Under the pieces are notes generated by a model that had not been told where the DNA came from, searched no databases, and was given only the letters and a program-made list of their open reading frames with translations. 64,000 nt of DNA. It comes from Oopsacas minuta (lineage: Eukaryota > Animalia > Porifera). The DNA lies in assembly GCA_024704765.1 (NCBI GenBank), contig JAKMXF010000288.1:186001-250000 (forward strand). Direction: 5' to 3'. Below, one piece after another: positions 34,001 to 63,514 of this stretch. The number at the start of each line of letters is the position of its first letter. Position 1 is the stretch's first letter. Made by a program: the position numbers and the translations under genes.

Positions 34001-37000
34001 AATAAATAAACATACAAACAAACAAATAAATAAATACACCATTAGAAGTATCAAATACAGAGTAACTTCGTTAACACAAACTCTGGATAAGGCGAACACA
34101 TTTTGACCGTCGTTAGTGTTTGTATTAACGAGGTTCTATTGTGTAAGATAAATGGATTTAAGAAAAGTGAAAACTCACTAGAACAAGATCTATAATTCCT
34201 GTATAATAGGAATCCTTCATCACAAGTACACTGATAAGAACCTTCAGTGTTGTGACATGTGTGATCACACAAGTTATATTCACACTCATCAACATCTAAA
34301 CACATAAACAAATAAACAAAACACACTAACAAACTAACAAACTAACAAACAAACAAACAAACAAACAAACAAACTCACCAAGACAAGATCCATCAGGAAG
34401 AGTTGTAAATCCAGATCTGCAGTAACATAAATGTGATCCTTGTATGTTAAGACAAATTTGTTTATCATTACAAGTGTTAGAATTGGGAGAAGCACACTCA
34501 TCAATATCTATAAATACAGAGGAATAATTAAACATATTTCTCTTAATCAGATGAAGTCATCAACAATTAACCCGGTGAATTGTATTACCTGTACATCCGT
34601 AGAAAGAGCTAGAGTAATACCCCCCACTACAATCACATGTGTAACTCCCATCTGAGTTAACACATATTTGTTCGCAAGAATGAGACCCCTTTATACACTC
34701 ATCAATATCTACAAGCAAATACAAGATAAATATAGTAGACTCGAAAAATATGGACTTTTAAGGAAGGATTAAATACACTCAACTCCCGTCATATCAAACA
34801 CGAATATATCAAAGTCTGAGATTGTACAAATATGGTTATAAACCGTCAAAGTATCATATATTTATCGGTATATCAAGGTCATTATCACGGTCCCTTGAGC
34901 TTCGCCAAAACGAATGTCTCCTTTAGCTTGGTTTCAATATGAACTATGGATAAGCTTAAATATATAAATACCTTCGCATATGTCAGTCTGTACATTCTTC
35001 CTGTATTCAGGTTCACAGTCACATACGTAAGATCCCTCTGTATTCCTGCAATACTGATTGTTCTGTGTGCATTCTATGGCTAAGCACTCATTGATATCTA
35101 CAGTAAATATATAGAAATAACTAGCGTTAGAATACCTGCTAATATCCTATCCGAAATAGGTGAATTCTGCGTACATTGGTGTTGGCTATTAGCACATGTA
35201 TTGCTCTATTGGGATAGTTTTTCAGGGGCGTTTGGGGTTCATGTAAACTGTAAATATCCTCCTTAACATTAGCAAAATTGGAGAAGAACTACATATTAAA
35301 TACAACACGTATTGCGGCTTGGTTCTAGAAACAATATACTGTTCATATACCTCTGCATTGATAGAAGTTGTACAACTCATAACCAGCATTGCATTCACAC
35401 TCATAAGTACCGGAGAGATTAATACAATTCTGTTCACAAGTATTTGTATCAGAGCACTCGTTAATATCTACAAAATTATACAAATAATATCAATTCGTTC
35501 GTATTTATGTATAATTTTTGAATATTAAAGACAGGCAAATCTCATATTTGCCAACCAGCAGGGAAATATTGGATATTTAGGGAAGAGGGAAAATTCCTTT
35601 TATTTGCATACAAAATTAGAAATCCAGAGAAAGAAAGCATGAAATGATTGAAATGTACAAGTACATACCTTCACATTGAGACGTTTGTGTGTTCTTGAAA
35701 TATCCAGGACTACATTCACAAGAATAAGATCCAAAATAATTAACACAGGATTGATCTGAATCACACTCATAAGTTCGAAGAGCACATTCATCCACATCTA
35801 TATTAAAATATCATAAGGTATGTTTATAGCAGAATTAGGACCCTATAAATCCCTAACCCGAAATAACTTACCAGTACAAGTGTACTCTCCATCAAGCTGA
35901 TAACCGTCAAGACAAGCACATTGATAGCCTCCGTCCGTATTCACACACACCTGTTGACAGTTGTTGTTGTTGCCTGTACTACATTCATCTTCATCTAACA
36001 ACACAATGCAGTAGAACCTCGCAAATACGAATTTCGGGGAAGATGATTTACTGGATATTATCCTTACCTATACAAATGTTGTCTGATGACAGAACTGTCC
36101 CTACTGGACACGAACAGACGTAGGAGCCGATGGTATTCTCACATCCGTAAATACAGTCTCCCTCATTAACAGAGCATTCATCTACATCTGAGAGAAGAGA
36201 GAGATATTTGAATACATACAGATTAACTGGAATTGATGCTTAAACGCGAGAGTAGAAATAATATTCAAATACAGTAGACATATTCTATCTCCAACACATC
36301 GAAAATTTCCCATTGACAGTTTGAGTTATAGTGGAAATCCCAAAGTGAGAGAGCTTAAAAATATACTAAATAATCTAGGACAAATCTCATTAGAATGTAC
36401 GAAAATACTCGTTAACCGAATGTCAGAATTGGGGCATTTCCCAAAGTGCAGAGTCCTGCAAATGCTGGACAGGGCACGTCACTCTGGGAGGTTCTACTCT
36501 AGCTGATATCACCTATATATTACAATCATAGACGTACCTTGACAGAAAACACCTCCAGCCCCAATCTCATACCCCTCAATACACAAACAATCTCCTACTG
36601 TAGGTATACATCTACAGCCATCTCCTCCAGGTTCACAATTATATTTGTAACAAGATCTAGCTTGATACAAGTTGTATCCCGCTCTACAACTGCACTGATA
36701 GCTTCCTTGCTTGTTAGTACATATGTGATCACATACATTTAGTAAACACTCATTTACATCTAGAAATGATAAAATTTATTGATAGAACTGATACTATAAT
36801 AATAAAACTGAAATTTGATTATTAAAGGATGGCTCTTAAGCGGAGTCTGCTGTATTATTATTCTAGGAATTCGCATTACTTGATATACTTACCAATACAG
36901 CTGTCACCCTCCTGATCATACCCAGCTGAACAAGAACAAGTATATGAACCTGGAGTGTTAGTACAGCTGAGATCTCCGGGACACAGATCCCGCAAACATT

Positions 37001-40000
37001 CATCTGCATCTAATATAAAAAGTAGAAAATATTAAAATTGGAGCCAAAGAGTTGTAACTTTAACAGAATGGATTTTTATAAGAATTCATTGGTGAGAATA
37101 TATTAAGCTTTTCCTTGTAATTTTTAGAGTCTTCAACAATACTTTTGAATAATTAAGAAGCCAATAATACTAATTCTTACCAAAACATCTCTTATTGTCT
37201 GTGTACAGGTCATACCCTACGTAACAGGAGCAGTAGTAGTTATTTCCAGATGTGATGCAGATATGCTCACAGCCTCCGTTATTGAGGAGACACGGATCTT
37301 CCGCTAGAATATAGTTACACAAAGTTATTGGGAGTACACATAAACTTGTAGATAATTAACTGCTCGTATTGTCGCTATACCCATCTATTCAATCAGAGTT
37401 TATTTCGAATCAGAGCTGCAAATGGGTCACACAAAGTGACCCATGACCCACATGACCCATCGAAGACGTGACCCATGACCCATCGATTATCTCGTGACCC
37501 ATCTTGACCCATCAACTTTTGAAACACAATTCAGTTTCACACTCAGAGATTCCTGTTCCTTGGGTTAGAATAACTAGAAGTGTTGAAATCAATTGCAATC
37601 CAATTTCCTGCATTATTATATTCTTGACAATAATATTTCCGTGACAAAACATGATTGGTGATAATCCTAGTACCTCTTAGACATTAATGTGTAGCAAATC
37701 GCATATAACTTCGTTGTATTTTTCCAAATACACAAAATGCATATAAGTACTGGTGGGTCAATGACCCATTTGTAGCTCTGTTTCGAATAAAGCGAGTGTT
37801 CAAATTTTGTTATTTCAAAATCTGAAATTCAGTATGATAATAGAAATTATAATTTTACTTGTGGAATAGCAAGATCTCTCATCTACAGCAAGATTATAAC
37901 CGGCGCCACATTCACAGTAGTAAGAACCACCTGTATTGACACATTTCTGCTGACAACCTCCGTTACTATCAGCACACTCATTAACATCTACAAATAACAT
38001 AATGTAATAAAGTGTGGATAGCTTGTCAATAGGAAAGGGGAAAAATCCGTAGAATCGGTAGATGTAGCCCTGGGATAAGCTTTTCAATGATAATATTTAT
38101 CGTATAATTTTAGAAATATTTTACTATTATTATAATACAAATACTCAAATACAACTACTAATAAATAGTTCACATTGTAAACATAAATTTATGAAAGTAA
38201 ATATGTAAACAAACAAACAAACAACATTCTACATATTCAAATATTGTAAGTCATCAACTGTAATATCTCTACCCGAAATAACAGTGCTAAACTTTCCAGA
38301 ATTTTCGTCAGTAAACTTCAGTAATTGCTCATAGGAAAAATGATCGTTTTCGAGGGAATTGGAAATATAAGGATACCAGATTTCATTATTTTCCCTGCCG
38401 ATTTGCTGTTTATACTGTTCGTTATTCAAAACAAGAGTTACATCATCGATTAATTCGGATGTTCCAATCTCATCTGGGGCGAGCAGACTAAAAATATACC
38501 CATTTAAGTTAAGTTTGGTTAAATTCGAAGCACGGATCTCTGCAAATGCTTTCGCTGCAACAACAGCCCCCATATCTTTGCCCCCAAGGTACAAGTCACT
38601 TCCGGTTAAGCTAGGATACAGGTGACAAAATTCTGAAATCAAAATTTGGAAGTCAAAATCATTTGAGGTGGGACGCGCGTATCCAGCAGCGAAATCTAGA
38701 TAGACAATATTTGCATTTTCATTCCAAGATTCAGGATTCGTATTAAACTCAATCCGCATCTGTTCATCTACAGGGTTAGATTCGTACTCCATGTCTAGAG
38801 AGAGGTGTTTTGGACCTGGACGGGGCTTTTCAGACGGACCGGATGAAGACCTGGTAGAGGACGTCGGGATTCCAGCGTGAGTGATCGTAAACACAGGTAC
38901 TGTTGTAGTGTTAGTACAAGGACAGCAATGATGATGGTGGTGGTGGTGGTGTTTGTGGTGATGATATATAATAATATCCTCATTGTTTATTGATGAGTCT
39001 ACGGCAGCTGTGTTGGTACTTGATGAAGTAGCAGGGGAGGAAGTTGGAGCAGAAGGATTTATTGGGGAATTCGTCGGGATTGGTGGTGTGGGTTTGGGAC
39101 AAGGAGGACAGTGTGGAGGATGTGGGTGGTGGTGGTGGTGGTGGTGACCGTGGCGATCGACATCGTCAGGGTGAGTCGGTGCAGTTGGACAAGGCGGACA
39201 ATTGCATTTACAACAAGGGGAAGAGGTTGGATGATGACGAGAAATATTATCGTCACTAGCAAAGCTCAATTCATAAGGACCGCCAGTTCGGAATACGTCG
39301 ACAAGTGCACTCGTTTTTCCATCTCCAAACCAAACCAATAGTGGTTTCTGTTTGGCGTCTTTGGAATTTGAAGGGAAATACCAAAGATTAAATTGGTTGT
39401 CATGTATTGTGATTAAATGGTTATGCGGTTCAATATTTCCGGCGGTTTCATCAGAAATCGGACGGCAATTGGCCAGGGTAGCAACCAAACAAGCAAGAAA
39501 TATGTGGAATATTTGCATGAGTGAAAAATGGCAAATTAGTTCAAAATAAAATTGTACAAACGATTATGTATTTATACTTGAGAAAGTTAAAAGAGATTCG
39601 ATTAGAAATAATCGTACTTAGAACTTCTTTACAAATCTTACATAGAACTGGCTTCTGACAATTTGAACACTAATAGACCAACTTGACAAAAGAAGTTTAC
39701 CATATTTAGCCAGTGAGATAAAAAAAGCAAAATCGTCATAGTTTATTTACTCAAAAGGTGTTAGATAGTAAACAATAAATAGAAAGTACAAGATGTGGTT
39801 ATTAGACGACTACATAAGGAGAATTATATAATTCTGGTCGCTCTCCGGCTTTATAGAACTAGCATAGGACATAGCCGATGAGCCAAATACGGATTGGGGA
39901 TACGGTGGGGCGCTCCCACCTCCCAGAAGGGGATTCGGGAAAATTCCCAGAAATTAGAAAAAATAAATCGAAGTACCCAATTTCACTCAAAGTTCTACTG

Positions 40001-43000
40001 GACATTAAATCGTCGCCCCAGCTTACAAATAACAGAATTTATATCACACTAGAAACTTACCAAAACAAGTTCTATTATTTCTAGATACATAATACCCGTC
40101 ATTACAGAGACAAGTGAAACCTCCAGGTAAATTCAAACATCCATTCTGACACAAAGTTCCGTATAAGCGACAATCATCAATATCTAAATGAATCCATACA
40201 ATTTAAATCTACAGTCAACTCCTGCTATATCGAATGGGCCCCGATAATTACTTTATCACGAGCAGAGATTTATATAACCGAATGTTACTTTGACGGTTTG
40301 GGACTATATTTGACAATTTTCAGATTTTGATATAATAGAGTTGACTGCTTGTGAATTGATTGAGGAACTTTTAAGACCTCTCTCCTTTCGATACATGAAT
40401 CTATTCACCAACTCCCTAACATGCTTCTGTAACGCAATATAAGTTATGTCCCAGTTTCCATAGTTACCTCGTTGGTATTTGGCTACACCCCTCAGCGAGG
40501 GAGACTACTATTAACAAACTTACCATTAGCAACAAACTCAGCAGTAAACTGAGCACCAGCTGATCTATCGGATACATGCATCTTGACTAGCATGTAATTA
40601 TGGGTAGCAAGGAAAGTGTAATCACTGAAGTCACCACAATAGTTCCCATGAGAATACCCAAATATTTGGTGACCATCTACTACTTCCAATCCATTAATAC
40701 AATTTCTGTAGCTAAAATAAGACAGTCAATATATCAAAATGTTTAATGTTCGCTAAATATACAAATTCCCTGTAGTTAGCAACATTTTCATTGATCGACA
40801 ATCAATTAGGTTACGATAAATTGTACGTACTAATCCTTGTTTGCCGAAAGGGTATGTCTTATCCGAGTTCTACTGTATTTGTAACAAACAACAAACCTTC
40901 CAGGTATATTCATATCCACAACTAGACGTATATTATAACCGAGAGGTCCATGTATCAACCATTGACACTCATTACTGCGGTGAGTATCCACTGAATAACT
41001 GAATGCACCCGTGTAACCACTTATTAAACCCCCACATGATGTAGAGAATTCATTCTCTGGTGTAGGTGTAGTGTCGATAGGGAGAGCTGATGGTCTTTCA
41101 GGATAACCTAGTCAAAACATAGTATAAAATACTTACAGCAAAAGTTCCGCTTAAGCGTGACAGCAGCAGAACCATGCAAATATAGTCGAAATCGTGTTTT
41201 TCTTCTCGAAAATGCACAAGAGAGAATCTACTGTTTATGGAGAAACAAGCACATGCAATGGGGCAGAAATACACGATCTCGGCTGTAGTGTAAAAAGCGT
41301 AGTCTACTGTATTTGTTATTTGAGAAATCTGATAATTTATCGTAAATAACAACATAGTTATAACTACTGTGTTTGAGAAAGAAACCTAAGAAAATTATTT
41401 TTTTGATTTTGTATGAGGCTTTTTTGGTAGTAAAGGATTGCGTATTTTTGTATTCTTTTTCGCGAGTTTTTTGAACTTCTTGTGCTGTTGTTGTCGCTGT
41501 GTAGGGTTTATTATTTGTGAGGATTTCTTGGGTTTAGAACGGCTATCATGTGACATAATCTCCTTCACTTGTTTATATTTTTGTTTCTGTTTGTCTGCAT
41601 TTTTCTCAATTTTCACACCTTTTGCATTTTTCCGATTATAAGCATTTTTCGGAGTTTTGTGAACAAATCTTTTCTTTGAGGAATCAATATTCTTGTGTTT
41701 CGCATTTGCCTTCCTAACAACCAAATTCCTACCTTGGAATTCCTCTCCATGCTTCTTGAGAGCTAAAATTAAATCAGATTTTCCTTTGAAAGTTACAAAA
41801 CCGAATTTTTTACTCTCTCCTGTAACTCTATCAGTCACAATGTGCGCTTTTACCACGTTACCACAGTCAGCGAAAAATTCCCATAATTTTTCCTCATCAA
41901 CTTCTGAGTGTAGATTAGAAACAAAAACAGTTGTTTTGAAGTCTTTTTTCTCGTTTTTACCACACAAATCAACATTTATATGTCTTCCTGCAACTAATTG
42001 CCCGTTCAACTTAGTAACGGCCTTTTCAGTATGTTTAATTTTTGTAAATACAACGTATCCGTATAGAGATTTTACTGATGGCATTTTATGTTTTAAGACC
42101 ATATGTGCTGGGATTTTAGCTTTTGAAGTTGAAACCGCTCGGATTCTCGCACTTTGAACTTCGCCGATTTCTTTGAAAAGTTTTGTAAGTTTTTTAACAT
42201 TATAAGTGGTAGGTAAATTTCCAACGTAAATAGTATATTTGTCTTGTTCAGATCTATCAACCATATTCCCTGATTCGTCCTCACTTTCATCTGATTCAAT
42301 AGATTCTTCACTTATTTGTTTGTTTGAAGATGGTTTTTCATGTTTACTTTTTTGTTGTTTTGGGAGCGAAAAAGACTCAAAAGTTGGAGGATCATTTGTT
42401 GATTTTTTGAAATGTTTGGCTAGCTCAGACATGACACTTTGTTGGGTATTAATGAAGATATATTAATTTGTATGGGAGAATAATTATAAACAGGATGGTT
42501 GTGCAACAAATACCAAAGGTGATACAGGGTGCCAGTGATATCGAAAATTCTCGTTTGTGGAGGTTCATTTGTGTAGAGGACTTGGAATTCGCTCTACAGT
42601 GGAACCTCGTTGATACGAACACCAACGGATGGTCAAAATTAGTTCGCATTATCCGGAGTTTGCGTATTAACCGGGGTAACATCAATTGAATAATCATTGT
42701 ATGGACCTGATTTTGTGGATTTTTTTCAGATTCACCGTGTCCGTATTAACGAGAGTCTACTATATATATTTTTAAGAGGTTCACCACTTACACAGGGCCC
42801 GTTTGTTGAGGCTAGACTGTAGTACCTCGAAAAGCAACCGGGGAGTTCATCAATTTTTAGCACCCATTAGCGAGGGGGCCATGGCTCACACTGACCTTAA
42901 GACATATTCATATCTCGGTACCCCACAGTATAAATTATAATGTATAACTTACTACTACAGCTGTACATGAGATTAGCTTGTAGAGCATCTAGTTGAGACA

Positions 43001-46000
43001 GTCCATACTCTGGACCGATAGGAATGCCAGGTTCTAGAGCTTCTATAGTATCTTTACCGTTAATACTGAATGCTTTCCCTGTGTAGTGCATAACGGAATT
43101 ATAGTCATATGTGACACCTCTTGAATCGATATGGTAGTAAGGGAGTTTTCCGAAATTGTGTTGAAGATATGTAGGAATATTCTCAAAGTTTACTTGAATA
43201 TACTCGTCTCTATTGAGGGATAATTAAGTATAATTACACCATAGGGTGTATACAGGAAAATATTCGTATTGAATATATAGAATTATACGAAGCAAGACTG
43301 GTTAATACAGGTGAATCTTGTTAATACAAACTCTGGAATAAGAGAACACATTTTGACCGTACGCTCTTGTTCGTACTAACGAAGTTCCGCTGTAGTAACC
43401 GAAAGTACGTTCTACGCACTATAATTGATAAAAGACATGGACTAACAAGGTTGAAGTCTAAAATTGGGGAAATTGGCAATTACGAAAGATCCAAGAATTC
43501 CTACCATAGTAAAAGTGAAAAATTATCGGTTTGATTAAGAGAATTCATCTCAATTTGGAGGTGACAATGATTAGCAAATCTTGAAACTATTATCCTCGGA
43601 TAGGAATCAAGTTTAGAGGTATAAGAGTCTTTCATGGAAAATATGGAAAGTTTAATTAACACTAGCATCCAAATGTTCAACAAGTAAGTGAATCACAATT
43701 TGAATAGAATACGAAGCAAACTGGACAATTTCAAGCTAGATACGAAAATACACTCTTAGAATTCGAGTCCAAAACAAAAGAATTCCATAAAATGGACTTA
43801 TCACAGTCTTGATGCCTTTGTCCACAAGCTTTGTTATTGTACAAAAGTATATCTAACACCTATTTATCATATATGGACCTTCACAAAGAATGTGGCAATG
43901 TCTGTTCTATTTTTAACGAATATACGCGAAACTGTATTTGGAATACGTATTCCAAAACATTGATTACTATTTGAATAGAGATTTGTTACACTTACAACTA
44001 CAATTTGATTTGGTAATTGAACCGACAATTGTTTGGATATGAAATTTATTTCTTTTGAATATTTTAATTGTTAATTAACGCTTTTTCAGAAAAGACAGCT
44101 GTTTAGTGGTTAATTTCCCACTAATGCAATGTGTGACACGTGGAGTACGTGGACCTGAGCCCTTAGGGGACTTATGGGAGCGTCAACAGGTGTGTACATA
44201 GGTGACTGTCGAGGAACATTGATCAAATACATTAGCTCTGTAAATGACACTTAATCTAGCAAACAAAATGAAAATTTCTGTATATAGAAATTCGTGGTTA
44301 TTAAATCAGCTTAATATGACAGAGATTCCATAGGGAACCACCGCTGGCTTATCATATACCGCAGGAAAATATGGAGACATTCTAAACCTCTGAAGCAATA
44401 TCCGACGGAAGTTGTAAATTCTCCTAACTTCATTGATTAGTCACTAAAATTAATAACCATATTGCCATATGGATAATGATTAATAAATCAAATCATTACT
44501 AGATATCTAGACCAGAAAGTGAAAGTTCTCTCATTGAATAATATGTATAACAGTCAGTGGTGCTTATCACGAGCTCTGACGGAAATTTTCAGATATTATT
44601 ATCATCAGTGATAGTTTGCTGGGATGGGGAGGGGGGGCAGGCGGGAATCCTGCATCGAGTGTATGGCCAGCACTCCCCTGTAGTTTGGAGGGAAGATATG
44701 TCCTTACCTGTCTGGTCTGTTCATTTCATGCCAGAAACCAACTGAGTGACCAATCTCGTGTGTAATAGAAGAGAAGTAGTTACAGTATTGCCCAATTGAA
44801 ATATACTGTCTGCCTAGATTTAAACGACCAATGAAAGAGCAGCATCTATAGACAGATATAAGGTAAAATAAATTTTCTCTCATCAGATCTGATAGTTTCA
44901 AATATTTGTCACCTATCTCAGATAGTTTTTGAGATTTCGCTTAGATATCAAAATGACAAAATTACCAAATTTCAAATTTGTAGCTCTTACCAGTTTCTCA
45001 ATAATTTCCGGAGAAAAAAGCAAACATGGTTGAGTTTTACATTCGTATAAGATATACATACCCAGCTCCTTTGAAGAATTCAATGTAATTATATTCAGTT
45101 GTCCTAGCAGTGAATCTGATACATGTCAGCTCTTCCCAGTGCTTCATTGCGTATATAATATTACCACGAACACTATCTATATGAGTAATAAGGTTACTAC
45201 AGTGTAACATCCGTTAATAAGGTACAGAAACGAATGCTATCCTGTTACCTCGATGGTGGAGGTTCATTAGGATGGGGCTAGGAATTTGCTCTATTAAAAT
45301 TTCACCCCATTTCCACAGCCCCGTTAATTGTACAAATAAGGTCATAAACCGCCAAAGTAACATATAATTCATCGGTTGAATTGAAGTAATTATCACGGTC
45401 CCTTGAGTATCGATATTTTTGGAGTTGACTGTAACTATGACGTAATAATAACCTGCAATAGAACTATGAAATGCATAGGGAACAAGTGCATTTGGCCATA
45501 GCTTGTTCGGATTAGCTGTTGCTCCTCTCCTGTCTCTCCCTCCAGGGGTACCCTGAGAAGGGAGTAGAATGTAGCTTGTATTCGTAATTGGGTTAACCAT
45601 AATACCCAGTCCAATGTCTCCTTCATAAGTAGCTACAAACATATGTTAGTAAATAATTTCAAAAACTTTAAGTTCCGATTTGGTCAAATTTATGATCGGA
45701 AATGTCTGTAATTTTTAGAGAAACTATTCGAGGAACTTGAATGCTAAGTAATTACTAATGATAGGAGTTCAGAAAGAAGCTTAAGATCGTGTGTACAGCA
45801 TTCCATTGGCAGTTGCTGGCTACCATGAACGTCAAATTAAATACAGTGGGGGGAAGCAGACAATCACATAATTCGAAGTGAATAACGATTACGAGATCTA
45901 CGTATGTACAAGTGAACAATTAAAGAGGACCCACTATATGTGCATTACGCCAATATATTAATTCCCTTGAAATTATATGATTCATTATAGCTAGTTAGTT

Positions 46001-46210
46001 ACCTGCTGAACTACATGGATCTCCAGCGAAATCATACGGTCCCTGTACATACTCATCCTCCGGTATATACACATACTTCATATCACCTGTGGATTCAGTG
46101 ACCTCAGGTGGTGGAGTAGTAGAGGTGTCGGATATTTGAGCGGGGAATACATAGCAGATATACAATAGTATGATTAGAATAGAGATTGTGGAGTGACCAA
46201 TCAAATGCAT
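31047..46210 (-). CDS. Tolloid/BMP1-related astacin metalloprotease: signal - propeptide - astacin - CUB - ~20 EGF-like modules - CUB - CUB
   Basis: Signal exon at 46210; RDRR furin-like site then [16 protein letters not shown]; zinc motif [18 protein letters not shown] (~44760); Met-turn YDYNSVMHY (~43095); CUB exons 41107-40519; phase-1 EGF exons from 40186 to ~32130 (DIDEC/DVNEC...); two terminal CUB exons ending GGFYGTTF* at 31047. The exon phases I checked are compatible. Confidence 0.8.
34328..34373 (-). repeat. (TTTG)n microsatellite directly after a GTGAGT donor
   Basis: AAAC/CTAACAAA units abutting ctcacc at 34374-34379. Confidence 0.9.
37411..37780. mobile_element. hAT-type MITE with perfect 8-bp target-site duplication
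   Basis: TTTCGAAT|CAGAGCTGCAAATGGGTCA ... TGACCCATTTGTAGCTCTG|TTTCGAAT; clustered subterminal TGACCCA(T) motifs. Confidence 0.9.
38229..39518 (-). CDS. Secreted, inactive serine carboxypeptidase (S10)-like protein with a large His/Cys/Pro/Thr-rich insert; nested in an intron of the astacin gene
   Basis: 429-aa single-exon ORF with signal peptide. S10 motifs LWYFPS..KPLLVW..GGPY and [15 protein letters not shown]. The GESYAG position reads GKDMGA. Two poly-His tracts. Confidence 0.85.
   Translation of the reverse strand: MQIFHIFLACLVATLANCRPISDETAGNIEPHNHLITIHDNQFNLWYFPSNSKDAKQKPLLVWFGDGKTSALVDVFRTGGPYELSFASDDNISRHHPTSSPCCKCNCPPCPTAPTHPDDVDRHGHHHHHHHPHPPHCPPCPKPTPPIPTNSPINPSAPTSSPATSSSTNTAAVDSSINNEDIIIYHHHKHHHHHHHHCCPCTNTTTVPVFTITHAGIPTSSTRSSSGPSEKPRPGPKHLSLDMEYESNPVDEQMRIEFNTNPESWNENANIVYLDFAAGYARPTSNDFDFQILISEFCHLYPSLTGSDLYLGGKDMGAVVAAKAFAEIRASNLTKLNLNGYIFSLLAPDEIGTSELIDDVTLVLNNEQYKQQIGRENNEIWYPYISNSLENDHFSYEQLLKFTDENSGKFSTVISGRDITVDDLQYLNM
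40212..40347. mobile_element. CAGT-type MITE in an astacin-gene intron
   Basis: TA|CAGTCAACTCC ... GAGTTGACTG. Confidence 0.65.
41395..42432 (-). CDS. RBM34: RNA-binding protein 34 (Nop12 homolog, 2 RRM), single exon; nested in an intron of the astacin gene
   Basis: [22 protein letters not shown]; [34 protein letters not shown]; Lys-rich nucleolar-type tail. Confidence 0.88.
   Translation of the reverse strand: MSELAKHFKKSTNDPPTFESFSLPKQQKSKHEKPSSNKQISEESIESDESEDESGNMVDRSEQDKYTIYVGNLPTTYNVKKLTKLFKEIGEVQSARIRAVSTSKAKIPAHMVLKHKMPSVKSLYGYVVFTKIKHTEKAVTKLNGQLVAGRHINVDLCGKNEKKDFKTTVFVSNLHSEVDEEKLWEFFADCGNVVKAHIVTDRVTGESKKFGFVTFKGKSDLILALKKHGEEFQGRNLVVRKANAKHKNIDSSKKRFVHKTPKNAYNRKNAKGVKIEKNADKQKQKYKQVKEIMSHDSRSKPKKSSQIINPTQRQQQHKKFKKLAKKNTKIRNPLLPKKPHTKSKK
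42597..42762. mobile_element. CAGT-type MITE, third family ('aacctcgttaatacg')
   Basis: TA|CAGTGGAACCTCGTTGATACG ... CGTATTAACGAGAGTCTACTA|TA. Relatives near 5760, 17575-17697, 34070-34140, 43320-43395 and 53020. Confidence 0.65.
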
Positions 46211-51644: not shown

Positions 51645-52883
51645 TCAAAATATCTGGAGGGGATAGTCCATATTATTTGATAGTACAATAATGTTATAGC
51701 CAGACGTTACAAATACACCATTGGGCTTAATAATAGCCTTGTCATGTTCTCCGGGAAACGAATAGAGAAATTGTCCGGCTGGAGAATATATTTGTATCAC
51801 GTTATGATCTCCGATATAATTTGCCACTATTACATTTCCATCTTTGTCGATAGAAAATGAAGCTGGGTGATCAAGGTATAGGCCATTCCCCATAGGTAAA
51901 AGTGATCGGGATTTTTCGTATTTGGGTTTAGACATAATGTGTAAGCAAGGATTGCCACAGTCTAGTATATATATCTCCTCCCTAGTAACGAATATACTCT
52001 GTGGGAAGGTGCAGTATCCCATGAGTTGTATTTTGTCACGAGGGGCAAGATTTCTATTAAAAATATTAATACAATGTCCTGTTGAGGAAAGTGCATAAAT
52101 TAGGTCAGAATACTTATCGTAAATAACTGAGACAATAAATTCAAATTTCTCTTTAGTTTTTGAAAGTATTTTAAGATCGGGTTCCCCGAATGGGTTGAAT
52201 AGTATTCGAATAACTCGTGCGGTCTGTAGATCAGATAGAACTATTTCCTGGTGATTGATAAGCTCAATCGCACAAATACATGGACAAGATTCTATGGTAA
52301 AATAACTCAGTCCTTCTCCTTCAAGGGAGAAATACATGATTTGATTTTCACTAGAATTATTCACTACAATTAAACCTAGTTCTTCGTTCACAGATAATCT
52401 CCCAAATCGCCCCTTATTAGCCGCAATTGGTATAACAGACTGTGCATGTTTCTTGGTAATATACTGCTTCGGAGTTTTCTCTATCGCTCCTAAATTAGCC
52501 AGACCTCTTCTCAACTCTCTAGCTTCAAATACAAACTGATAATCAACATCTGCATTACTAGCATCTATCTGTAATAGTGAAATTTTCTTGTTCAAATCCG
52601 CAATAGTTTTATCTTTCGAATCGTAGATTCGATTTTCAGTCATAACATTTTCAATAGCAATCTTTATATTTTCAATTTGGTTTATAGATTTCAGAATTTC
52701 GGATTTGATATTTCTAATATCTCTCATTTGAGCTAATACCACATTTCTCCTATCGTTAACTTCAGCAATAATCTTGTCGAAAGATGTATTAATTACTACT
52801 TCTGTCTCTAACCAAAATTCTTCAGAATACCCGAAAGGAGTCGCCATTCTATAATTATTATCAAAATATGGTAAAACGCTCAT
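51645..52883 (-). CDS. Coiled-coil + NHL-repeat beta-propeller protein (TRIM-NHL-like, no RING or B-box), single exon
   Basis: Helical N-terminus, then NHL-like blades ending SFSIDKDGNVIVANY..IQIYSPAGQFLYSF..PNGVFVT. Confidence 0.8.
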   Translation of the reverse strand: MSVLPYFDNNYRMATPFGYSEEFWLETEVVINTSFDKIIAEVNDRRNVVLAQMRDIRNIKSEILKSINQIENIKIAIENVMTENRIYDSKDKTIADLNKKISLLQIDASNADVDYQFVFEARELRRGLANLGAIEKTPKQYITKKHAQSVIPIAANKGRFGRLSVNEELGLIVVNNSSENQIMYFSLEGEGLSYFTIESCPCICAIELINHQEIVLSDLQTARVIRILFNPFGEPDLKILSKTKEKFEFIVSVIYDKYSDLIYALSSTGHCINIFNRNLAPRDKIQLMGYCTFPQSIFVTREEIYILDCGNPCLHIMSKPKYEKSRSLLPMGNGLYLDHPASFSIDKDGNVIVANYIGDHNVIQIYSPAGQFLYSFPGEHDKAIIKPNGVFVTSGYNIIVLSNNMDYPLQIF

Positions 52884-60814: not shown

Positions 60815-62077
60815 ATGGCATCAGTTAATCCTGTTAATCCAATCCCAGTGGGTGATAAGCTTGAGAGGAAACTGAATTTATTGAAAAAAGTGATTGATGA
60901 GAATAAATCAGAAGTAATTCGTGTTAGAGAAGAAATGAAACAGCTGATAGACATGAAATCAGAAGAGGTGTTGAGAGAATTGGACAGTATTTGGACAGAA
61001 GTGAATAAGAGAAAGGAGAAGAAAAGGCAAGACATTGAGAAGGATATTGTAGAGATTAACGAGCACAAAAAAGCGATGGAAAAACTTTTCCTAAACTTGA
61101 ATCCTACTGCCATTCCTACAATAGATTTCACTGATACTTTCAAATCAGTTCATAAAGAAATGGACATAGAAATTCCTTACATTAAACTGACATGGAGAGT
61201 GAATGAACTGAGAGATAGCATAAACAAACTGTGTGGCTGTAGCAAACAGATCCTAAAGTTCTCAGAAGATAATCCTATTCAATTCAAGTGGAGTTCTTCT
61301 ACTGGAGGTGACGGGGATAAACAACTTAATTGCCCACGAGGTATAACAATAAATCCTGTGAATAATAACATTTATGTAGCTGATAGGTATCCTGACAGAA
61401 TTCAGATATTCTCTAAAGAAGGGGATTGGATTAGAAGTGTTAAAGATGTAAAAATGGTTAACCCAGAGAATATCCTCTTTATTAAGAATTCTATTTTAAT
61501 ACAATGTATCAGATGTATTCTAAAACTAAACGATTCAACTTTTGAGATAGAAAGCTACAAATCATATGGATATCTGATAGGAGGTATTTGTACGGACAAT
61601 ATCCATATCTATGTTGGTGTATACAGAAATATGAAGCTTATAAGTCTATCTATTGATTTGAAAGAAGAAAATCAAATACCTCTAATCTCTAATTTCCATA
61701 AACAAGGTGAAACTAAAATTAGAGATATCTCATACGTGGAAGGAGAATTCTATGTTTTATTGACTGTTACAGAATATCCTCTCCAAACATTTTCAAGAGA
61801 AGGAATTCTCCTCAGATGTCTCATCAAGAATGATTTATTAAATAAAGCTTGTTTCTTCTGTTTGGATCAACAATTCAACATAATTGTATCTGATGGAGGA
61901 ACTGATGAAGTAAAGATATTCTCTAATGAAGGTAAACTGATATATCAGTTCGGTAAGAAGGGAACAGCTGCAGGAGAGTTTTCTTCTCTCTATGGGGTAG
62001 CAGTAGATAACTTAGGGTCTATTATTACAGTAGATTGGAAAGAGAATCACAGGCTACAAGCATTCTCTCTTTTCTGA
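60815..62077 (+). CDS. Coiled-coil + NHL-repeat protein, single exon
   Basis: Coiled-coil N-terminus; QLNCPRGITINP..IYVAD..RIQIFS; FCLDQQFNIIVSD..EVKIFSNEGKLIYQFGKKG..GEFSSLYGVAVD. Confidence 0.88.
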   Translation: MASVNPVNPIPVGDKLERKLNLLKKVIDENKSEVIRVREEMKQLIDMKSEEVLRELDSIWTEVNKRKEKKRQDIEKDIVEINEHKKAMEKLFLNLNPTAIPTIDFTDTFKSVHKEMDIEIPYIKLTWRVNELRDSINKLCGCSKQILKFSEDNPIQFKWSSSTGGDGDKQLNCPRGITINPVNNNIYVADRYPDRIQIFSKEGDWIRSVKDVKMVNPENILFIKNSILIQCIRCILKLNDSTFEIESYKSYGYLIGGICTDNIHIYVGVYRNMKLISLSIDLKEENQIPLISNFHKQGETKIRDISYVEGEFYVLLTVTEYPLQTFSREGILLRCLIKNDLLNKACFFCLDQQFNIIVSDGGTDEVKIFSNEGKLIYQFGKKGTAAGEFSSLYGVAVDNLGSIITVDWKENHRLQAFSLF

Positions 62078-62665
62078 ACAGAAATTGTATTTTAGTAATC
62101 TAACTGCTCTGTACTATTTCTCTAATATACCTTATTATGCGACATATAGCCCAGCACGTAGATGCAACAGTAGCGGGCTTCGGGGGAACAAACCGAGCTT
62201 TTGGCCTGGATTTCAAATCCTGGCCGCGGTCCGGCCCCAGGTATACCAGGAAGTCCCTGATTTCCCAACCTTTTTCACCTGTGGACCCAATATACCAATT
62301 TTAACACTTTCTGTAGACCCCCTCCTATCAACTGCAATACGACTTAGCTGGTTCTAGTAGGTTAGGCGGGGACATGACAAGACAGTCACCAACTAAGATC
62401 TTGTAATGCTTCATGGGTATGTTAAAGAAAAATTATTTGGGTCAATTCATATTTTGGGGATACACAGCTGGTCTGTCACGAAATTACTCCTTGAAACTTG
62501 GTCGTGGGACCAAAATTATCATCGTAGAACCATTTTCCAGGAATTTCATCCCCCGACAATTTTCATAGAATTTTGAATTTTCCAGTAACAGGTATTTGAC
62601 CCTGAACTAGGCTCATGACTCGGACACTTTTATAGCTCAATTTTAGTTATCATATCTAGAAATTG

Positions 62666-63514
62666 ATGAGTGACATTGAAGATATTAAAAGTATAAGTAA
62701 CCCTCGCTTAACAAATAGAGATGGTAAACCTACTTGGTTGATTTGTGTTATAAAACGAGAATATTCTACATACACATCAACCCGCGTTCTTAATGGTAAC
62801 CATGGAAACGAGGATTCTCCTTCACAGCATCCTGAAGCAAAGTTCTTTGACCTTTGGTGGAAAAATCCTAGAAAAATATTTCCTGATCTTCCTTTCAATG
62901 AGATTGATAAAATACACTTTCATTTGATTTGGTATACATTGACATCACCCTGTAATAATTGTGTACAACTGATCAAAGGAAATCACCACTTATACAACAC
63001 TCTGAATATATTTACAGCCTCTGTTTATAAAAACTTGAAAGACAATTCGATAGAAGCGAGTAATCGCATTTATGAATTGAGACGTAAGGGTGTGGGAGTC
63101 GAGCCGATATCTGAGGGGGAATATCAACATTTTACGACAGGCCGCGTGGGTCATGAACTACCCCAACTTCCGTTCTTCAATCCTGAACAAGACTTCATTG
63201 ATCTTAGAATTTCATTTACCGCAGACACGACTATAACGACTGATAGAAATCCAAATTCCTTTGAGACAAGATTGTCACCAAGATACGATTCTATAAACCA
63301 ACATTTGGTACCGATCACTAATGAGAGAACTGTTTTAATAGAACCGTTTCCATACCAGGGATCTGCCCCTAGTTACCACCCACAGTTACCGAATACCTAC
63401 CCCTCAGAGGAAGATCATGAATCTGTGACTAACTACAAAGTTATTAAACGTGAGAGATCAAAGAGGAAATTGAAAAGGTTGAAAAGGAAAAATATTTTCA
63501 TTGAAGACAATTGA
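62666..63514 (+). CDS. AID/APOBEC-like zinc-dependent cytidine deaminase with low-complexity and basic C-terminal tail
   Basis: First ATG at 62666. HPE (residues 55-57) and WYTLTSPCNNC (Cys96/Cys99); also TWLICVIKR and LNIFTASVY..LRRKGVGV. Confidence 0.85.
   Translation: MSDIEDIKSISNPRLTNRDGKPTWLICVIKREYSTYTSTRVLNGNHGNEDSPSQHPEAKFFDLWWKNPRKIFPDLPFNEIDKIHFHLIWYTLTSPCNNCVQLIKGNHHLYNTLNIFTASVYKNLKDNSIEASNRIYELRRKGVGVEPISEGEYQHFTTGRVGHELPQLPFFNPEQDFIDLRISFTADTTITTDRNPNSFETRLSPRYDSINQHLVPITNERTVLIEPFPYQGSAPSYHPQLPNTYPSEEDHESVTNYKVIKRERSKRKLKRLKRKNIFIEDN

Follow-up and report, generated by a model that had tools for sequence, protein, structure and literature searches.

Glassin of the glass sponge Oopsacas minuta as a probable catalytically dead descendant of S10 serine carboxypeptidases with a His-rich insert in a surface loop

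A 64,000-nucleotide stretch of the Oopsacas minuta genome (contig JAKMXF010000288.1, positions 186,001 to 250,000 of the forward strand, assembly GCA_024704765.1; hereafter the window) contains the gene for glassin, one of three proteins thought to build the hexactinellid glass skeleton. Our analysis indicates that glassin is a secreted, catalytically dead descendant of S10 serine carboxypeptidases, with its His-rich part inserted in a surface loop; we give this reading a probability of roughly 0.85, and consider the S10 ancestry taken by itself to be very highly probable. Until now glassin has been treated as exclusive to its lineage, an ancestor having been found neither by BLAST nor by Foldseek and its origin having been called enigmatic (Shimizu et al., 2024; PMC10772126), and papers from 2026 still give it as exclusive to hexactinellids. 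Its ancestry and architecture are now well supported.

An earlier reading of the window, made from the sequence alone (the sequence-only reading), had proposed a dead carboxypeptidase scaffold carrying a poly-His/Cys/Pro insert. The signal peptide, the S10-like flanks, the insert and the early stop that it listed are all present where it had placed them, and the dead S10 scaffold is now backed by sequence, profile-profile and selection tests.

Evidence for S10 ancestry of the flanks

The glassin open reading frame (ORF) at 38229-39518 on the minus strand runs from ATG to TAG over 429 codons, is intronless and encodes a product of 47.8 kDa. Its parts are as follows.

38229..39518, minus strand: glassin gene of Oopsacas minuta (LOD99_3750 / KAI6653225.1), 429 codons plus TAG, no introns, RNA contig gapless on the genome
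39465..39518, minus strand: signal peptide, residues 1-18, assigned by homology; the hydrophobic N-terminus is kept in all orthologs
39255..39440, minus strand: N flank, residues 27-88, homologous in all likelihood to the S10 N-terminal strands and a degraded oxyanion-loop motif
38763..39254, minus strand: insert, residues 89-252, a disordered loop rich in His (26), Cys (10), Pro, Ser and Thr, ~18 kDa
39189..39215, minus strand: Cys motif 1, CCKCNCPPC, residues 102-110, CCxCxCPxC in orthologs
39099..39152, minus strand: first His run and, after it, Cys motif 2, PPHCPPC, residues 123-140; PPxCPxC is kept in all full-length orthologs
38916..38963, minus strand: second His run and, after it, Cys motif 3, CCPC, residues 186-201; CCPC is kept in all full-length orthologs
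38484..38762, minus strand: C flank, residues 253-345, the probable S10 core, spanning NPxSW, the nucleophile elbow and the strand after it
38565..38585, minus strand: dead nucleophile elbow GGKDMGA, residues 312-318, in place of GESYAG, with Asp315 at the position of the catalytic Ser
38232..38483, minus strand: conserved C-terminal tail, residues 346-429, with no S10 relation demonstrable by sequence and without the part that bears the triad Asp and His

Further motifs in the flanks are NLWYFPS (residues 44-50), WFGDGKTSA (63-71), GGPYE (79-83) and NPESW (261-265). The insert consists of 14.7% His, 16.4% Pro, 22.6% Ser plus Thr and 5% Asp, and includes a Pro/Ser/Thr spacer (residues 141-170) and a Thr-rich stretch (residues 202-214); the DNA of the first His run is a run of CAC/CAT-type triplets.

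Pfam, phmmer, flank profiles searched against the PDB and hhalign all relate the flanks to S10 carboxypeptidases, as the sequence-only reading had supposed. The Pfam profile PF00450 (Peptidase_S10) matches residues 255-342 over its positions 72-175 of 420 with 26.6 bits (E 5e-6), which exceeds its gathering score, 21.9, and is matched individually by seven of nine glassin sequences, the best E being 5.5e-7; in the Pfam scan of glassin, there was no match to the papain-like Peptidase C1 domain. When O. minuta glassin was compared by phmmer with 1.84 billion representative proteins, the search returned glassin fragments, one repeat artefact and two full-length genuine S10 enzymes, P0006 (E 1.2e-5) and P0007 (E 1.4e-4), which themselves score 309 and 299 bits against PF00450. 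Both are colinear with glassin: residues 104-165 and 173-270 of P0006 correspond to glassin 27-84 and 261-344, and residues 49-101 and 108-198 of P0007 to glassin 32-84 and 255-336.

Separate profiles of the N and C flanks, each from four species, were used for sequence searches of the PDB. The top matches of the C-flank profile are to human cathepsin A residues 78-168 (E 0.0025-0.005) and those of the N-flank profile to carboxypeptidase Y residues 16-71 (E 0.03-0.045), so that the two flanks fall at adjacent S10 positions. In profile-profile comparison by hhalign against an alignment of 78 S10 proteins, the N flank reaches 95% probability (E 2e-8, score 53) and adds roughly PF00450 positions 8-70, the C part reaches 97.5% (E 8e-12, score 83), and the joined flanks with the insert removed reach 99% (E 4e-18, score 128) in a colinear alignment that extends over template columns 43-317. 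As controls, 40 column shuffles per alignment and reversed alignments never scored above 24.

Loss of the active site

The catalytic Ser of S10 enzymes is replaced by Asp315 in O. minuta and by Asn in eight other glassin sequences, as seen in an alignment of nine glassins and in the HMMER alignment to cathepsin A. The oxyanion-loop motif GGPGCSS is degraded to GDGKTSA, and glassin ends 118 residues past the elbow, where S10 enzymes continue for ~270. The cap domain and the Asp/His-bearing region appear from the alignments to be gone or unrecognisable, with a short conserved tail in their place. The three changes put forward in the sequence-only reading (Ser to Asp at GKDMGA, a degraded WLNGGPGCSS and a missing Asp/His region) are thus visible in alignments to S10 proteins. 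Glassin has an S10 profile match above the cut-off and lacks the catalytic Ser, the Asp and His of the C-terminal third and GGPGCSS; because of these losses no serine carboxypeptidase activity is possible, and glassin is a pseudo-peptidase.

S10 enzymes lack anything comparable to the insert itself: where glassin has ~176 residues, they have 6-7; the ~170 residues that had been described as inserted ahead of NPxSW agree with this.

Identity of the gene as glassin

The genome of Oopsacas minuta, a hexactinellid glass sponge, carries the whole-genome project number JAKMXF000000000 (Santini et al., 2023; PMC10280926), and the siliceous host on which a mineral role depends is therefore given. LOD99_3750 has been described as the complete O. 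minuta glassin ortholog, a single exon nested inside another gene and encoding ~48 kDa (Francis et al., 2023; PMC10282587), and the window ORF agrees with this description in being a single exon of 47.8 kDa in a host intron. The protein is printed as Om_KAI6653225.1 in Supplementary Fig. 14 of Shimizu et al. (2024), with an N-terminal sequence identical to that of the window ORF apart from machine-reading errors; against Euplectella curvistellata glassin, Om_KAI6653225.1 shows 44.7% identity over 188 aa (E 5.8e-50, subject residues 239-426; Shimizu et al., 2024, Supplementary Data 7). The glassin homolog that the sequence-only reading had considered possible is thus the published glassin itself: the identity is settled, and the gene was already known.

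The features by which glassins are recognised are largely present. The C-terminal domain is orthologous to that of Euplectella glassin, a His/Pro/Ser/Thr-rich low-complexity region sits N-terminal to it, and the single exon is nested in a conserved host locus; the O. minuta insert has no alternating His/Asp (HD) repeats, having poly-His runs and 5% Asp. A 294-aa Euplectella-type glassin fragment, P0009 (UniParc UPI0006A661CF), consists of HTHATVPHTHAT repeats followed by the C-terminal domain, in which it is 41-45% identical to O. minuta glassin. The epitope of the Vazella pourtalesii glassin antibody, PEDAGRSELIEDVT, is found in ortholog L009 (see below).

Conservation in other glass sponges

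Orthologs were recovered by an exhaustive HMMER search and a C-domain profile search as C-terminal fragments (120-180 aa, prokaryote-style gene calls) on long contigs of seven European Nucleotide Archive (ENA) assemblies, and full ORFs were then read from the contigs. This gave eight further full-length glassin genes of 416-821 aa, two of which, L004 and L005, come from one sample and are almost identical copies. A word-indexed search with the whole O. minuta protein returned only the protein itself, and no relatives were found when metagenome contigs of the Joint Genome Institute (JGI) were scanned with the flank profiles.

The order of parts is constant in the eight orthologs: signal peptide, N flank, 10-Cys module, His-rich sequence, acidic linker, and C domain with GGK(N/D)xG. 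In the Vazella pourtalesii ortholog, a Phobius signal region of residues 1-18 has been reported (Shimizu et al., 2024, Table S1). The 10-Cys module (CCxCxCPxC, PPxCPxC, CCPC) is kept in the glass-sponge orthologs of the seven other assemblies and is doubled as one unit in L002; Cys motif 1 reads CPCPCPCPPC in L004 and L005. The His-rich sequence makes up 10-22% of the insert among orthologs, and insert length ranges from ~165 to 570 aa, mainly through expansion of HP/HT/GP repeats. The stop codon lies within ~2 residues of a common position in all loci except L009, six of the orthologous loci having a clean 3' end, and the fragment P0009 shares the C domain, the dead active site and the stop position.

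In a related organism (run X5, few per cent divergence; see below), 97 other letters replace 22 at 39039-39062, in the Pro/Ser/Thr spacer of the insert, and 38834-38967 is unaligned. From the differences in the spacer it follows that the length of the loop varies between close relatives.

Two further observations concern single loci. Gene calls are mirrored on either side of L009 (ERZ26869290 ctg313487, a Vazella-type glassin), and the last 8 residues of its ORF diverge; its 3' end looks like an assembly artefact of inverted duplication. In L002:3054-5516, L004:3237-5369 and L006:3609-5516, each His-rich unit opens after an acidic stretch and x-PGP (EMPGP, DMPGP, EAPGP, ERPGP), and Euplectella glassin has a similar ELQRPG ahead of its His-rich unit. 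These sites are candidate unit borders or processing sites.

Synteny is also conserved: in six of the eight orthologous loci, glassin is preceded by an RRM gene and followed by EGF exons. Of the others, L002 has EGF exons and L009 no assignable neighbours; astacin and RRM genes accompany L006, and an astacin gene is also found in L003, L007 and L008.

The ratio of nonsynonymous to synonymous substitution (dN/dS) was estimated by the Nei-Gojobori method for close pairs with unsaturated synonymous sites. It is 0.08-0.22 for the N flank (seven pairs among close relatives), 0.05-0.14 for the core (six close pairs) and 0.11-0.22 for the tail. These low values imply that the dead scaffold is under purifying selection and therefore has a function.

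Transcription as a unit separate from the host gene

Contigs of four public runs (X1, X3, X4 and X5) were placed on 36500-42450. Run X1 behaves as RNA, with six minus-strand joints bounded by GT..AG. Runs X3 and X4 are DNA: outside the repeat-rich ~37300-37900 and ~40100-41100 their depth is flat at 53-88, and they contain no GT..AG splice joints. Two transcribed features follow from X1.

37988..40060, minus strand: host-gene intron of 2073 nt, GT..AG (joint 37987>40061 in X1, depth 1173), enclosing the whole glassin gene in the same orientation
37959..39748, minus strand: glassin transcribed span, one gapless X1 contig of 1790 nt, depth 232

The depth of the glassin contig in X1 compares with 40-100 in the neighbouring intron and ~1000-1250 in the host exons, assembler depth being a poor measure of expression. 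In X5, a 1821-nt contig covers 38037-39665, and the intron bins beyond it (39684-40081) are zero. The glassin gene is thus transcribed, as the sequence-only reading required, and is a unit separate from the host gene. The sequence TATAAATA lies 51 nt upstream of the glassin ATG. A misread multi-exon gene was considered and rejected, the RNA contig being colinear with the genome and the ORF open in all orthologs.

Structure models

The low-confidence ESM Atlas model, which uses no multiple sequence alignment, has S10 clusters as its nearest structural neighbours (template-modelling score 0.45, 236 residues aligned), and 96 of its 100 feature neighbours are S10 proteins. When S10 sequences were added to the alignment, AlphaFold2 (AF2) gave flanks with a predicted local distance difference test (pLDDT) score of 86-97 and an insert (residues 93-239) below 50. 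Strands 82-88 and 253-260 of this model form a hairpin with the insert leaving its tip; in the model, therefore, the ~165-residue insert, placed between GP(Y/F) and NPxSW, would emerge at the tip of a beta-hairpin on the surface. Compared with cathepsin A, carboxypeptidase Y and Kex1, the model has Z scores of 19-21 over 230-239 residues, versus at most 13 for other alpha/beta hydrolases, and glassin residues 24-429 overlay cathepsin A residues 14-449. The hydrolase core with the insert as a surface loop, on which the sequence-only reading had looked to structure prediction, was obtained in this S10-informed model and not from glassins alone (see below).

Proposed function of insert and scaffold

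The insert would be the working part of the protein, matching the His-rich region of Euplectella glassin, and the dead scaffold might serve folding, secretion, (self-)assembly or docking. According to papers citing Shimizu et al. (2015), Euplectella glassin is occluded in silica and promotes silica polycondensation, and by analogy O. minuta glassin may act on silica or metal.

The loop may also be released by proteolysis. Some processing of glassin is likely because silica-extracted Euplectella glassin, at 23 kDa, has about half the mass of its precursor (Francis et al., 2023). Cathepsin cleavage at two [V/L]G'G motifs bordering the glassin repeats, giving 25 kDa, has been proposed (Francis et al., 2023). 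The corresponding xGG motifs of O. minuta, TGG78-80 and LGG311-313, are 25.7 kDa apart and coincide with the S10 GP(Y/F) motif and the nucleophile elbow. As S10 core motifs have a structural role and are for the most part buried once an alpha/beta hydrolase is folded, conservation of xGG needs no role in cleavage, and S10 ancestry thus revises the published proposal for glassin processing. The basic residues near the insert ends to which the sequence-only reading pointed (ISR; KPRPGPK) are present; they are not conserved in orthologs and are weak evidence for a processing site, and dibasic processing sites at the insert ends were rejected for this reason.

Points against the proposal and alternative readings

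Several points weigh against the proposal as a whole. Concerning descent, the last 85 residues are not assignable to S10: the tail (residues 330-429) reaches 2.6% probability against the S10 profile in hhalign, and the S10 partners proposed for it differ between MAFFT and hhalign. AF2 run on nine glassins alone gave a pLDDT of 38.7, which is unusable, and the S10-informed model is compatible with homology and not independent proof of it because S10 sequences were supplied. Concerning function, Vazella silica yielded no glassin, the antibody did not tag silica, and glassin was not upregulated at high silicate (Shimizu et al., 2024), which makes a silica role outside euplectellids uncertain. HD repeats are crucial for silica formation in Euplectella (Shimizu et al., 2024), and the O. 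minuta insert has poly-His runs in their place. Location of the O. minuta protein in spicules, its cleavage and its action on silica are predictions by analogy with Euplectella.

The weak support for a silica role in rossellids lends some weight to the alternative that glassin mainly binds or buffers metals (Zn, Cu, Ni), by metallothionein- or histatin-like chelation through poly-His and CC/CxC/CPxC. Its ten Cys lie in three motifs, each beside a His run, which are kept in seven full-length orthologs and duplicated as a unit in L002. However, the Euplectella ortholog was purified from silica and directs silica polycondensation, as papers citing the original study describe it, and the Aphrocallistes vastus ortholog is upregulated in the growing, mineralising osculum (Francis et al., 2023). 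In addition, the Cys residues of a secreted protein are more likely to be in disulfides, and hexactinellid spicules are reported to be low in Fe, Zn and Cu. A mainly metal-related role is therefore judged improbable.

It is very improbable that the likeness to S10 enzymes arose by chance or convergence, the conserved ends being a glass-sponge-specific fold of separate origin. Identities between single glassin and S10 sequences are low (~20-25%), no homolog outside Hexasterophora was found by BLAST and Foldseek (Shimizu et al., 2024), and AF2 did not fold glassins alone. Chance similarity is nevertheless disfavoured because two separate segments match one family at adjacent colinear positions with the hallmark motifs in order; moreover, the hhalign scores are far above those of shuffled and reversed controls and the Pfam match exceeds the curated cut-off.

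Haloalkane dehalogenases and epoxide hydrolases use an Asp nucleophile, and Asp315 of O. minuta stands exactly at the nucleophile position. Enzymatic activity kept or gained through Asp315 is nonetheless scarcely credible: the other eight glassin sequences carry Asn at this position, neither a His nor an acid partner can be placed by alignment, and the oxyanion motif is degraded. Finally, a decaying retrocopy or annotation artefact, which an intronless ORF within another gene's intron and without half of the parent domain might suggest, was rejected as having a negligible probability: the ORF is open in eight orthologous loci of seven other assemblies with the same set of neighbours (unassigned in L009), dN/dS is low and the stop is conserved, and transcription exceeds the intron background and yields a stand-alone contig in a second organism (X5).

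Host gene and neighbourhood

Gene calls around glassin lie on one strand, in the order astacin gene, chimeric RRM+CUB+EGF call, glassin, and long EGF/CUB gene. The same nesting has been published for glassin of A. vastus and O. minuta, and the nested gene next to it is said to be misannotated in O. minuta as the first exon of a different gene (Francis et al., 2023); the chimeric call beside glassin fits this misannotation. A gene of 345 aa without introns, which encodes two RRM domains (Pfam RRM_1, E 5e-31) and lies at 41395-42432 on the minus strand, is apparently nested in the preceding intron of the host, and a loose end of X1 at 41107 suggests an exon border. The host, at ~36500-46210 on the minus strand, is an astacin-CUB-EGF (tolloid/BMP1-like) metalloprotease, with the RRM gene and glassin, on the same strand, in two introns that follow one another. 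In vertebrates, BMP1/tolloid enzymes act as processing proteases on mineral-matrix proteins; that the astacin protease of the host might be the pro-glassin protease is pure speculation by analogy.

At ~40280-40880, the summed contig depth reaches ~14,000 in the DNA runs against a baseline of ~65, and many contigs have loose ends (40282, 40443, 40503 and 40877). The introns on either side of the CUB exon may therefore contain a repeat family of high copy number. Elsewhere in the window, coiled-coil and NHL-repeat-like ORFs lie at 51645-52883 (minus strand) and 60815-62077 (plus strand), and a further ORF at 62663-63514 (plus strand).

Comparison with known systems

No text linking glassin to carboxypeptidases was found in the literature. 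A SWISS-MODEL template named 'Serine carbopeptidase II' is given, uncommented, for Euplectella glassin residues 227-336 in the legend of Supplementary Fig. 15 of Shimizu et al. (2024), and the S10 link was thus partly anticipated by a template for a 110-residue piece. As far as we have found, earlier work makes no mention of the N flank, the split-S10 architecture, the loss of the active site or the selection acting on the scaffold. The S10 ancestry provides glassin with an ancestor, with an outgroup for rooting its tree and with a structural frame, scaffold versus loop, for experiments.

Euplectella glassin shares with that of O. minuta the conserved C-terminal domain, a species-specific His/Pro/Ser/Thr-rich region ahead of it and the single exon nested in the same host gene. 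The two differ in that region, which comprises HD, P and HT tandem units in Euplectella, whereas O. minuta has a short insert of ~165 aa with poly-His runs and a 10-Cys module.

With Peptidase S10 enzymes (cathepsin A, CPVL, carboxypeptidase Y), glassin shares the first strands through the strand after the elbow, the order of motifs and the signal peptide. Unlike them, it lacks the Ser nucleophile, has a degraded GGPGCSS and a missing or unrecognisable helical cap and Asp/His region, and carries a hairpin loop of 165-570 aa. Cathepsin A, the 'protective protein', has a non-catalytic scaffolding role in a lysosomal multienzyme complex; it is among the structure matches (PDB 7kdv) and offers a precedent for the S10 fold as a docking platform, although, in contrast to glassin, it is an active enzyme without a low-complexity insert.

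Silicatein, the axial-filament protein of demosponges, is derived from cathepsin L. Like glassin, it is a lysosomal-type protease fold recruited into the silica skeleton of sponges, but it has a papain-like fold, occurs in another sponge class and retains the whole domain, with a modified active site, as the working part, whereas the working part of glassin appears to be the inserted disordered loop. It is possible, if doubtful, that glassin belongs to a larger family of secreted, dead S10 scaffolds in glass sponges that carry interchangeable low-complexity cargo on the surface loop. Such a family would be a modular display system of the skeletal matrix derived from a lysosomal carboxypeptidase; it would have a parallel in silicatein, which arose from lysosomal cathepsin L, and would suggest a lysosome-related origin for the compartments in which silica is deposited.

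Among the other hexactinellid proteins, hexaxilin resembles glassin in having a hydrolase fold (metallo-beta-lactamase) with substituted catalytic metal ligands (Shimizu et al., 2024), and perisilin in combining a folded CAP/GLIPR1-like domain with a flexible His-rich region. Their folds are unrelated to that of glassin, and the His-rich part, where present, is a C-terminal tail and not an internal loop. Overall, glassin would join silicatein and hexaxilin as a third sponge silica protein that derives from a hydrolase fold and whose active site is disabled.

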